A program made the position numbers and the translations under genes. The notes under the pieces are model-generated. The model had not been told where the DNA came from and did not search any database. It was given only the letters and a program-made list of their open reading frames with translations. A stretch of DNA of 63,867 nt, the filler included, from Pelomyxa schiedti (Eukaryota; Protista; Evosea), in assembly GCA_020536535.1 (NCBI GenBank). It is 6 parts of 6 records of this genome, joined end to end, with 100 filler letters (N's around TTAATTAATTAA, not from the genome) between each part and the next. Parts side by side here need not be neighbours in the genome. Positions count along the whole stretch, not along the records: positions 1 to 28,961 come from JAHLWZ010000226.1; 5 more parts are not named here. The stretch is one strand, 5' to 3'. Positions 6,600 through 9,441 of this stretch are shown here, piece by piece; within the stretch, counting starts at the first letter, position 1, and the number at the start of each line of letters is the position of its first letter.

Positions 6600-8240
6600 A
6601 AAAGAGAGTAAAAGGGTAAAGGTTCTCTTGCTTGTTCTCCTGCTTGGGTTGCACGTGCATAAAGGATAATTATTTTGGTGTGGTTAGCTTCGAAGCCGCA
6701 CTGTTGTCCAATACTCAGTTGCGATTACCTTGGAATCAATCACTGTTGCATCAATGCAATGCGGTTTTGTCGCCTAGGATCATCACATTAATCCATCGGC
6801 CTGCATTGTATCTCGAGTATATTCACACAGAGTCCGCACAGTGTCCATAGAGCGTGAGAAGTATTCACCTCGTATACTTTTCGATCGGCATTCCAGACTA
6901 AGGATATCTTAATTGAGGAAAATTGTAGCAATAACAATTACTTGGAATTTTTGACTGCAAGACTTTGCAATTTTCAATAGGGATCCTGTGAGCTTGATTG
7001 CGTAACCAGTGCTTTGCAATGCGGGAATGATCTACAAATTAGGTTTTCTATTCCATACCACACAGACTCTCCTCAAGATTTATGGTGAATGTAGTTGTCC
7101 CTGCAGAGCTGTTTTTTGTAGGTACACAGAGAGATAATACGCGAGTAATACTAATTGCGGCCTCTCTTTGGGCAAATTCTGTGTCAAATTCTATCTCGCC
7201 ACAAGTAAGAGCTGATAACTTTCCTCCAACAGGCATTTCTACTCTGTGCATAGAAATTCGTTGTCGCTTTGTGATATAAGTGTTTGAAAACAAAGGGTGA
7301 AATACCTCCACTCGGCACCGCACAAGTCCCTGTGGCGCTGCTCTATAAAGAATGAATAGATACGAAGGACAGAAGTAAATTACGTGGTTAGCCGGTTATA
7401 CACAATTAAAATATCTCTTGCTCTTCCACTCATTATCCCTCTTCTAGAAAAGATGAGGTCTGGCCATCACGCACCTCTACAAATATGATAAGATCAAGGA
7501 AACGACATCGGGACTGTAAGTAAACAATCGTTATTTAGGGGGGGTCGTTTTCTTCGGTAGATCCAAGCATCAATCAACAACACTCTCCACGTGAATGTAT
7601 GTGGTGCACACAGTTGATTGAGTTAAATAAGATCTCTGTCCATAAACTCTCCCCCTAGGCCACGCAGTCCATGCAGGAGGGAACGACGGCCACCACCAAA
7701 ATAAATCGCACCAAAACGCCGCACCTGTAAATGAGCACCGTATCCATTTTCTTGAATCGACGCGCAGGCAACTACTGCCATAAACGAGGCGTCTTGAAGT
7801 CCCACAACATTTCCCCTGGCACCACAAACATAAACCCAACGATTTATTTTGTAGATCGATTGGTTGGTACAAGGTGATGGTATCACCACCTTTCCCATTT
7901 TTTTTTCTTTTCAAGAAGAGCCTCTTTTTTAAAAAAGACGCTCCTCCTTTAAAAACAACACAGCGCCAATCATCCCCCCGCCACGAGAGCCTCCCGGGGC
8001 CCGGCCTCGGCCCCAGGAATCTCTCGCAACAGGGTTGCAGACGACGCGACCAACCGCCACACCTTTTGCCCGGCGATTTTCGCCGGGCTGAGACGAGACA
8101 GCCGGTCGATCGGGGACTCCCCACCCAACAACCCCCCTGGGCACCCAGTATTCCGCGGGGATTCCCAGCCCAGTTGGGTTTGGTCTAGGAATGTGTTCGG
8201 GGTCTCCAAACGCCCGCCGCGGTACTTTGGTGTCATACTC
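6600..8240 (-). pseudogene. Possible fragmented multi-exon gene or pseudogene of unknown function
   Basis: A chain of short minus-strand coding-like segments (7970-8275, 7623-7898, 7048-7323) with stops; no recognisable domain. Confidence 0.25.
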
Positions 8241-8399
8241 GGGGGAAGGGGGCTCAGCTTGTGCTTCGCCCCCAATCGTGTTTTGATTTGTTGGTTTGTT
8301 GTGGTTTCTGTCGCTCCTTATAAGCACCGGTTTTTCCCCTTTTCGCGTCGTGGGAATTTCCCCATGGGACAGAAAATCTTTAAAAATTTTCGCAGTTGA

Positions 8400-8499
8400 T
8401 GTGCTGAGGTGATGGTGACTAATTGTGGGTCCTTTTAAGGCCACAGACCGAACATAATAAAAGAGAATTCTCCACACGCCTCTTCACGACCTCCGCACA
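8400..8499 (+). repeat. 5' LTR of TRIM
   Basis: TGTGCTGAGGT...ACCTCCGCACA; internal hairpin TGTGG-(GT)CCTT-TT-AAGG-CCACA at 8424-8445; AATAAA at 8456-8461. Confidence 0.93.
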
Positions 8500-8503
8500 A
8501 TTA

Positions 8504-8521
8504 TGGTAGCAGAGAGTAGTT
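8504..8521 (+). promoter_or_regulatory. Primer-binding site complementary to the 3' end of initiator tRNA-Met
   Basis: TGGTAGCAGAG is the reverse complement of the 3' end ...CUCUGCUACCA found in many eukaryotic tRNAiMet; it lies 4 nt downstream of the 5' LTR. Confidence 0.85.
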
Positions 8522-8812
8522 CATGGTCTCTCCGACATCAACCCCTGCGACGGTGAGTCACAACTACGACATCTGCTCTGATGAGTGCGTGGCGCGACAC
8601 ATTCTCTACTTGAGTCAGCGATGCTTGGTGGCTCGTGCAGTGCGCTAGACGGCTCAAGGAGGGGTGGCATGCTGGCAAAAGGGGTGGTCAAAATAGAACC
8701 ATCGAGGCGCGCAGCAGGTCACAGTATCAACAAAAGCAGAAAGGATGTGCTGTGCGGGAAGGCCAAGTGGCACTTATGGGAGTGGAGTGGTGTTGCGAGG
8801 ACGCAACATCTT

Positions 8813-8826
8813 GAGCAGGTGGGAGG
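8813..8826 (+). promoter_or_regulatory. Polypurine tract of TRIM
   Basis: GAGCAGGTGGGAGG lies 1 nt upstream of the 3' LTR. Confidence 0.75.
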
Positions 8827-8827
8827 T

Positions 8828-8927
8828 TGTGCTGAGGTGATGGTGACTAATTGTGGGTCCTTTTAAGGCCACAGACCGAACATAATAAAAGAGAATTCTC
8901 CACACGCCTCTTCACGACCTCCGCACA
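8828..8927 (+). repeat. 3' LTR of TRIM
   Basis: Base-for-base identical to 8400-8499. Confidence 0.93.
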
Positions 8928-8973
8928 GTTGACTAAAAATTTTGATTTTTGTAATCAGTGCGCCATCCCTATT

Positions 8974-9323
8974 CCCTATTTGTTTGTCAACTTCTCTATC
9001 TGACTATGTGCGTCCTTGGCTGAGCCCATAAAGACTGTCGAGGGATTGGGTTGACTGGTGGCCATCTCCACAAGTTGTGACCGTGATGGATGATCCAATA
9101 TCCCCCAAGTCCGCAACAAACGCGAGGACAGATCCCAGAGGTAATCCAAAAACGTAGAATGAGGCCAAGTTGATAAACGCACCCCACTTCTGCCTTCCAC
9201 ACCCCACGGAGTACACCCCCACACACCTGAAGCCCATCAGAGGTGAGAAACATGGCGCACATGGGCAACAGCTTGGCAACCTGTATTCAAGTTTGTTTGG
9301 AGAAGAAACAGGAGAGTGTCATA
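8974..9323. repeat. Dispersed repeat, copy 2 (internally deleted relative to 1-530)
   Basis: Matches 1-121 joined to 303-530 via an AT microhomology. Confidence 0.9.
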
Positions 9324-9441
9324 CCAGTGCTACTACGTCAGCATTATTTGTATACATTTTCGCCAGAAGACATGTATGCCAATATTGTAATAGACAACGT
9401 AATAATGGGATGCCGTTCTTAGTTTTTGTAAAAAACTACTG

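Follow-up and report, generated by a model that had tools for sequence, protein, structure and literature searches.

A probable TRIM, a miniature non-autonomous LTR retrotransposon, in the nuclear genome of the amoeba Pelomyxa schiedti

Anatomy of the locus

The DNA analysed here, referred to as the window, is a stretch of 63,867 nucleotides (nts), filler included, joined from six parts of the genome of Pelomyxa schiedti, an anaerobic amoeba of the Archamoebae (Amoebozoa). The assembly of this genome (strain SKADARSKE) comprises 52.4 Mb in 5337 scaffolds, and derives from seven micromanipulated, MDA-amplified single cells by way of a SPAdes co-assembly with k up to 121 and RNA-seq scaffolding (PMC8887013). 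Within the window, a 528-bp element bounded by a pair of short LTRs sits between two copies of a target-site duplication, with an expressed gene on the minus strand to its right (Table 1).

Table 1. Features of the element and its surroundings, in window coordinates
Feature	Positions	Strand	Basis or remark
Left target-site duplication, GTTGA	8395–8399	.	Sequence; the empty-site contig of run X2 retains one copy
5′ LTR, 100 bp, TG..CA ends	8400–8499	+	Direct-repeat comparison
Spacer ATTA, 4 nts, LTR to PBS	8500–8503	+	Kept in all copies
Primer-binding site (PBS) TGGTAGCAGAGAGTAGTT, 18 nts	8504–8521	+	Exact complement of the initiator tRNA-Met 3′ end plus CCA
Non-coding internal domain	8522–8812	+	ORF scan and copy comparison; 8512–8670 varies between copies, 8671–8827 is invariant
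Polypurine tract (PPT), 12 of 14 purines	8813–8826	+	A single base separates the tract from the 3′ LTR
3′ LTR, same sequence as the 5′ LTR	8828–8927	+	Direct-repeat comparison
Right target-site duplication, GTTGA	8928–8932	.	Sequence; empty-site contig of X2
Right-hand neighbour gene, expressed, spliced	9004–9355	minus	Intron 9279–9322 spliced in X3

An initial annotation, made from the sequence alone, had described this feature as an intact miniature LTR retrotransposon (TRIM), and its structural account is borne out by base comparison. The two LTRs are identical at 100 of 100 positions and begin and end with TG…CA, and their outer 11 nts form a terminal inverted repeat that matches at 10 of 11 positions; the perfect 5-bp duplication is likewise present on both sides. 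A repeat search stretched the direct repeat to 103 nts at 99% identity, but the additional 3 nts are a chance match of two in three, contributed by the spacer on one side and by the duplication on the other. A perfect direct repeat of 100 nts is itself far beyond chance. Each LTR carries an AATAAA within an A-rich stretch at about its positions 66–76. The placement of the PBS shortly past the 5′ LTR and of a purine tract before the 3′ LTR was confirmed in sequence, as was the lack of pol by an ORF scan: ATG-started frames in the element reach at most 41 aa, a frame of 93 aa, the maximum when any start is allowed, extends into the LTR, and no gag or pol coding capacity was found anywhere between the element's ends.

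TRIMs are defined as elements of less than 1 kb with terminal repeats of 100–250 bp, a PBS and a PPT, and no coding capacity (PMC6934838). At 528 bp, the Pelomyxa element falls well inside the limit of 1000 bp, and it possesses TG…CA terminal repeats, a PBS, a PPT, independent target-site duplications among its copies, and neither gag nor pol, such that the TRIM architecture proposed by the annotation holds in every structural respect. The window feature is accordingly read, with a probability of about 0.9, as a non-autonomous, TRIM-type LTR retrotransposon residing in the P. schiedti nuclear genome.

The family in the assembly and the state of the insertion site

BLAST searches with the whole element and with the LTR alone against the whole assembly, at E up to 10, located LTR sequence at 25 places in ~52 Mb, a very low copy number. 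The family comprises at least three full copies, two or three copies cut by contig ends, solo LTRs, and older fragments. The second full copy (C596:50292–50815, 524 bp) is flanked on both sides by the duplication GTTGG, and both of its LTRs are identical to those of the window copy; indeed, the window LTR is 100% identical to LTRs on six contigs (C596, C507, C192, C1624, C4252, and C667). A third copy is divided between contigs. On C4153, the pentamer CCCTC precedes a 5′ LTR and 284 bp of internal domain, while on C1624 a PPT and 3′ LTR precede CCCTC, and the presence of the same pentamer on both outer flanks identifies the two pieces as a single insertion. The copies on C507 and C192 (5′ ends) and on C4252 (3′ end) all break off 120 nts into the element, a length that corresponds to the k−1 overlap of a SPAdes assembly graph at k = 121. 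Three solo LTRs carry duplications of their own (TGCCA on C667, GCCCC on C534, and TTTAG on C826), showing that some copies have been in place long enough for LTR–LTR recombination, and about 10 degraded LTR fragments, truncated or diverged at 84–98% identity, record older activity.

The internal domain measures 324–328 bp in at least three insertions, located at different sites and flanked by different duplications. Since the same architecture recurs at different sites with 5-bp duplications of its own at each, the short form itself has transposed repeatedly. Segmental duplication of the copies is contradicted by their different flanks and duplications. The question of whether the element is single-copy, for which the annotation had looked to an assembly-wide BLAST, is thus settled by the multiple copies, solo LTRs, and distinct duplications recovered. 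Beyond the assembly, a search of JGI metagenome contigs for relatives returned no exact match to a conserved 22-mer of the LTR.

Comparison of the window copy with C596 revealed a mosaic of conservation. All 9 substitutions and 4 indels between the two fall within 8512–8670, and the 357 nts made up of 200 nts of LTR and the 157 nts at 8671–8827 contain 0 differences (Fisher p = 1e-7 for the difference in variability). The PPT is likewise the same in the window copy, C596, C1624, and C4252, and is thus conserved over four copies. This mosaic fits either of two explanations, namely that the cis-acting ends are under constraint, or that co-packaged RNAs have recombined.

Several family members occur in unusual settings. 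At C884:60524–60688 (L010:1500–1670), a rearranged fragment presents the last ~37 nts of the LTR in both orientations, back to back, and these inverted LTR ends are followed by a variant PBS and ~100 nts of internal domain. At C507:53824–54717 (L006), the 5′ LTR and PBS of the TRIM are linked, across a scaffold gap of 100 Ns, to an actin gene that runs on the opposite strand; RNA-based scaffolding created this join, for which chimeric or read-through RNA pairs may be responsible. One degraded LTR appears, between identical flanks, at both C1176:8857–8926 and C573:50540–50609 (L019 and L020), and given those flanks the two are probably duplicated haplotigs of the co-assembly. Finally, C198:8116–8162 (L022:1501–1547, minus strand) holds 47 nts that are 89% identical to positions 8555–8601 of the TRIM and include the motif CUGAUGAG. 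This piece is the sole match to the internal domain elsewhere, and lies 1.9 kb upstream of an RT fragment on the same strand (C198:5834–6250), with no recognisable gag or PBS between the two. The family's coding ancestor could have left it as a relic, or it may simply mark a spot rich in transposable elements.

The state of the insertion site was examined by comparing public runs over 7900–9400, all in the form of pre-assembled contigs, which report presence rather than absence and carry neither strand nor transcript ends. In run X1 (single-cell DNA, Logan contigs), the left junction is bridged by 8263–8428 and the right junction by 8902–9094, providing the support for both LTRs that the annotation had considered necessary, and a further contig spans 8470–8857 with 0 differences. 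Run X2, which shares its sample record with X1, contains instead one contig of 629 nts that joins 8392 directly to 8926 at the depth of the flanks. This contig omits 533 nts, the sum of the element (528 nts) and a single copy of the 5-bp duplication, and leaves one GTTGA; its junction is ambiguous by 7 nts (CA plus GTTGA), as expected. It is a precise empty site, of exactly the kind that the annotation had suggested seeking among reads, here found as a contig. As the site is filled in X1 and empty in X2, both from the same culture, the insertion is polymorphic, recent, and not fixed. Because the assembly pooled seven cells, the two runs most simply represent different cells, or different alleles after amplification. 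Zero differences over LTRs of 100 bp bound their divergence only to below ~3%, and hence the youth of the insertion is far better supported by the empty site than by the identity of the LTRs. The annotation was right that the insertion is very recent, though this conclusion rests more on the empty site than on the identity from which it had been drawn.

Three readings compete with that of a propagating TRIM. The LTR pair could be an artefact, in which a solo LTR or a collapsed repeat was falsely duplicated in the co-assembly of seven amplified single cells. A SPAdes assembly of single cells with RNA-based scaffolding (PMC8887013) invites such suspicion, as does the ending of several family members at contig breaks. 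Against this, independent Logan contigs of X1 cross the left and right junctions and read through the entire internal domain with 0 differences, the architecture is repeated between other flanks and duplications in another full copy and in the split one, and the empty and filled sites differ by exactly the element and one copy of the duplication; an artefact is thus extremely improbable. The element could also be an isolated derivative of an autonomous element, shortened by internal deletion, and no propagating family. Such a derivative would be in keeping with the small size of the family and its lack of a known partner, but is very unlikely in view of the three or more insertions that share the same internal domain of 324–328 bp at different sites with different duplications, which indicate transposition in the short form.

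The third reading draws on RNA structure. Retrozymes are TRIM-like non-autonomous retroelements that contain hammerhead ribozymes and spread via circular RNA, and they have the layout of TRIMs (PMC5680766). The internal domain of the Pelomyxa element holds CUGAUGAG, conserved in C884 and C198, and an RNA contig starts and ends in the same 30-mer. The motif is located in the internal domain and not in the LTRs, and the GAC that comes after it stands in the place of the GAA required by the catalytic core; the shared 30-mer, for its part, is a product that a k = 31 graph yields at any LTR. Moreover, a permissive Rfam scan of 7900–9400 (E up to 10) detected no hammerhead or other ribozyme, leaving a retrozyme with hardly any probability. 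Within the element, the same scan matched no RNA family of any kind, 5S included, and thus gave no sign of a captured RNA gene in the manner of Cassandra.

Some observations pertain to the flanks of the insertion. Over 8263–8375, the run contigs contain a second, diverged version with 7 substitutions and 3 indels, continuing into unlike sequence, and before 9104 (9094–9104) a different sequence appears in both DNA and RNA runs. Either a divergent haplotype or a locus paralogous to this one could be the source of this second version. Farther to the left, 8120–8250 is a short high-copy repeat whose contig depth reaches 500–700, compared to 25–85 in the flanks. Its other copies are bordered by mutually reverse-complement 11-mers, with loose ends at 8120 and 8250, an arrangement that gives the repeat the appearance of a MITE-like element's central part.

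Initiator tRNA, primer-binding site, and candidate helpers

Contig C533 bears two identical genes for an initiator tRNA-Met of typical eukaryotic form, recognisable by an A1:U72 pair, the anticodon arm GGGCCCATAACCC, and an AUCGAAA T-loop. The last 15 nts of this tRNA together with CCA complement the window PBS at 18 of 18 positions, and pairing stops at nt 19. Exact occurrences of the PBS 15-mer without CCA are limited, across the entire assembly, to the window element and the two C533 genes, and of the 46 distinct tRNAs sampled, the other 45 pair with the window PBS over 4 nts at most. Priming by initiator tRNA-Met, as the annotation had supposed, is thus supported by the complementarity with the genome's own tRNA genes. 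The two genes belong to a tandem tRNA cluster (C533:13313–14448; L055) with a period of ~1064 bp, each unit of which comprises tRNA-iMet, tRNA-Glu(CTC), and tRNA-Gly(CCC).

The perfect PBS is confined to the window copy. Its siblings on C596, C4153, C507, and C192 read TGGTAGCATCGAGGTAGTT, which matches the initiator tRNA over 8 contiguous positions, followed by two mismatches and a one-base bulge, and the old fragment on C884 has a PBS of the variant type too. No tRNA suited to the variant was found in the genome at up to 2 mismatches, nor among the 46 distinct tRNAs sampled. Two substitutions and one indel, exactly three places in all, separate the PBS of the window copy from that of its siblings, and each of the three changes restores the complement of the tRNA.

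A source for such a change exists in the replication cycle of retroelements. Plus-strand strong-stop DNA copies the 3′ 18 nts of the primer, up to m1A58 (PMC11251516), so that the PBS duplex of a new copy is a heteroduplex that can resolve to the sequence of the tRNA. By this route, the perfect PBS of the window copy may have been rewritten from its primer tRNA during plus-strand strong-stop synthesis, a proposal to which we give slightly better than even odds. It resembles the PBS reversion of retroviruses, where the 18 nts beside U5 are likewise copied from the primer tRNA up to m1A58 and a copy can gain a perfect match to its primer (PMC11251516); the PBS differences between the window copy and its siblings are confined to an equivalent 18 nts. 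Here, primer templating is read from natural copies and not from a replication experiment, and the opposite has been reported for the yeast element Ty1, whose primer tRNA sequence is reportedly not inherited (ref. 26 in PMC5371799).

The Ty1 report lends weight to a contrary polarity, in which the perfect PBS is ancestral and was kept by a separate sub-lineage, the sibling PBS having degenerated once with no tRNA-templated rewriting. Outside the PBS, too, two substitutions are peculiar to the window copy, at 8603 and 8670. In addition, a G at 8526 is common to the window copy and the old C884 fragment, while C596 and C4153 have an A, and on the strength of this shared G the window copy could branch outside the variant group. 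Conversely, the 357 nts over which the window copy and C596 are identical point to very recent shared ancestry, the PBS differences are restricted to the very 18 nts that are copied from the tRNA, and C884, the oldest relative, carries the variant type. For the direction of change, the only outgroup-like copy is C884, at 88% identity a dead, rearranged fragment. Ancestry of the perfect PBS is a serious possibility, somewhat short of even odds, and rewriting from the tRNA remains our preferred reading of the contrast.

In the cycle proposed for the family, the element would be transcribed from its LTR, and its RNA packaged by the Gag/Pol of an autonomous LTR element acting in trans. Initiator tRNA-Met, annealed to the PBS, would prime the minus strand of the DNA, and the polypurine tract the plus strand, after which the partner's integrase would insert the copy through a 5-bp staggered cut. 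The genome is well stocked with candidate machinery, having at least 38 integrase places and at least 86 RT places. Nevertheless, BLAST of the assembly at E up to 10 recovered no autonomous element sharing the TRIM LTR, the leader or PBS flank, or the PPT flank, no integrase match was found on any LTR-bearing contig, and a pattern search of the whole genome for the LTR end plus PBS retrieved only TRIM copies. For these reasons, mobilization in trans by a helper is inferred from the behaviour of the family. The same situation prevails for many published TRIMs, whose partners have likewise not been identified (PMC6934838).

The annotation had argued that an active autonomous helper should exist in this genome, and this expectation stands in part: apparently intact autonomous Ty3/gypsy elements do exist, but none shares the LTRs of the TRIM or a contig that bears them. 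The clearest, on C1462 (L062:1–1641), combines a gag of 426 aa, with a weak match to the Ty3 capsid, and a pol ORF of 1540 aa in which RT precedes the integrase. Its PBS lies 2 nts past the LTR end and matches the same initiator tRNA-Met at 17 of 18 positions, and its LTR of ~380 bp (TGTGGC..GCCACA) recurs as solo LTRs on C607, C2807, C934, and C2171 (L101–L104), the one on C2807 with the 5-bp duplication CAAAT. The C1462 family thus resembles the TRIM in its TG…CA LTR ends, its initiator tRNA, and its 5-bp duplication, and differs in its far longer LTR of unrelated sequence, in a spacer of 2 rather than 4 nts, and in the absence of a shared leader or PPT region. The raised alignment score between C1462 and the TRIM comes mainly from the shared PBS, as judged by eye from the alignment. 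As an LTR-sharing partner, C1462 was set aside owing to its unrelated LTR. A helper is plausible in kind.

Other candidates were discarded. C746 encodes a PR-RT-RH-IN ORF of 1337 aa, and its apparent PBS near an integrase proved to be a 13-mer inside the protease coding region; C884 and C4325 offer rearranged or truncated LTR fragments, and C198 its 47-nt TRIM-like piece with no gag or PBS nearby. For assignment of the lineage to Ty1/copia or Ty3/gypsy, the TRIM presents no coding sequence, and its sole internal match is that same C198 piece near an RT fragment.

A more comprehensive scenario would have retrotransposition ongoing in the cultured strain, with the window copy a fresh product bearing a PBS rewritten from the tRNA and mobilized by a Ty3/gypsy element with unrelated LTRs. 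Taken as a whole, this scenario is tentative and rather unlikely. A helper with unrelated LTRs would imply that recognition rests on the PBS, the termini, and RNA packaging, and not on shared LTRs. If the scenario were true, the window copy would be a naturally occurring case of a TRIM whose PBS was repaired on the primer as template.

Known TRIMs and RNA from the locus

TRIMs have been reported from plants, algae, fungi, an ant, the honey bee, cestodes, and bivalves (PMC6934838, PMC3532108, PMC4558846). In plants, those of the type of Witte et al. (2001), together with Cassandra, Wukong, and SMART, have much in common with the Pelomyxa element: a length below 1 kb with repeats of ~100 bp or more, a PBS directly after the 5′ repeat that is often for tRNA-iMet, a PPT before the 3′ repeat, and no ORF, as well as 5-bp duplications, solo LTRs, insertion near genes, and a partner that is often not known (PMC6934838; PMC3281118). 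The Pelomyxa element differs from them in having no 5S or other captured RNA gene, in its mere ~25 LTR places in 52 Mb, and in its host, an anaerobic archamoeba. The animal TRIMs, namely PbTRIM of the harvester ant, ta-TRIM of taeniid cestodes, and biv-TRIM of bivalves, share the same miniature architecture; ta-TRIM is highly transcribed, and here too the partner was often not found (PMC3532108, PMC4558846, PMC6934838). Whereas biv-TRIM has no recognisable PBS, the Pelomyxa element has a perfect one of 18 nts, in a lineage of Amoebozoa.

Transposable elements of Archamoebae are essentially undescribed. The words “transpos” and “repeat” are absent from the text of the P. schiedti genome paper (PMC8887013), the Mastigamoeba genome paper makes no mention of transposons, and in the full-text literature no paper was found that links TRIMs or LTR retrotransposons with Amoebozoa or Archamoebae. 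As far as the literature searched extends, this is the first TRIM reported from Amoebozoa, in agreement with the annotation, which had raised the possibility of a new family. Since the family is small, very young, and polymorphic at a site within one culture, it constitutes a tractable case for how a miniature element finds its helper. Its two most worthwhile features are the polymorphic site, which provides a presence/absence marker for cells or lines of an amoeba that is uncultivable in axenic form, and the contrast between a perfect and a degenerate PBS, which bears on the inheritance of primer sequence in non-retroviral LTR elements.

RNA from the element is present in two single-cell RNA-seq runs, as a contig of 458 nts in X3 (8421–8878) and one of 189 nts in X6 (8676–8864). 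Both are identical to the window copy, and the X3 contig includes its private PBS. That X3 truly represents RNA follows from the splicing of a 44-nt GT..AG intron in the minus-strand neighbour gene (Table 1). In this run, the element and the right flank are covered, and the left flank is not. The element RNA may be its own transcript reading out, or the 3′ UTR of the neighbour gene reading in, with the strand and origin of the transcripts inferred. The neighbour has no Pfam match, and its identification as a MATE transporter, considered at first, was dropped for want of Pfam support. Its last ORF segment stops at 9004–9006, only 72 nts from the target-site duplication, and given this proximity and the RNA contigs that contain it, the element may contribute to the 3′ UTR of the neighbour gene.
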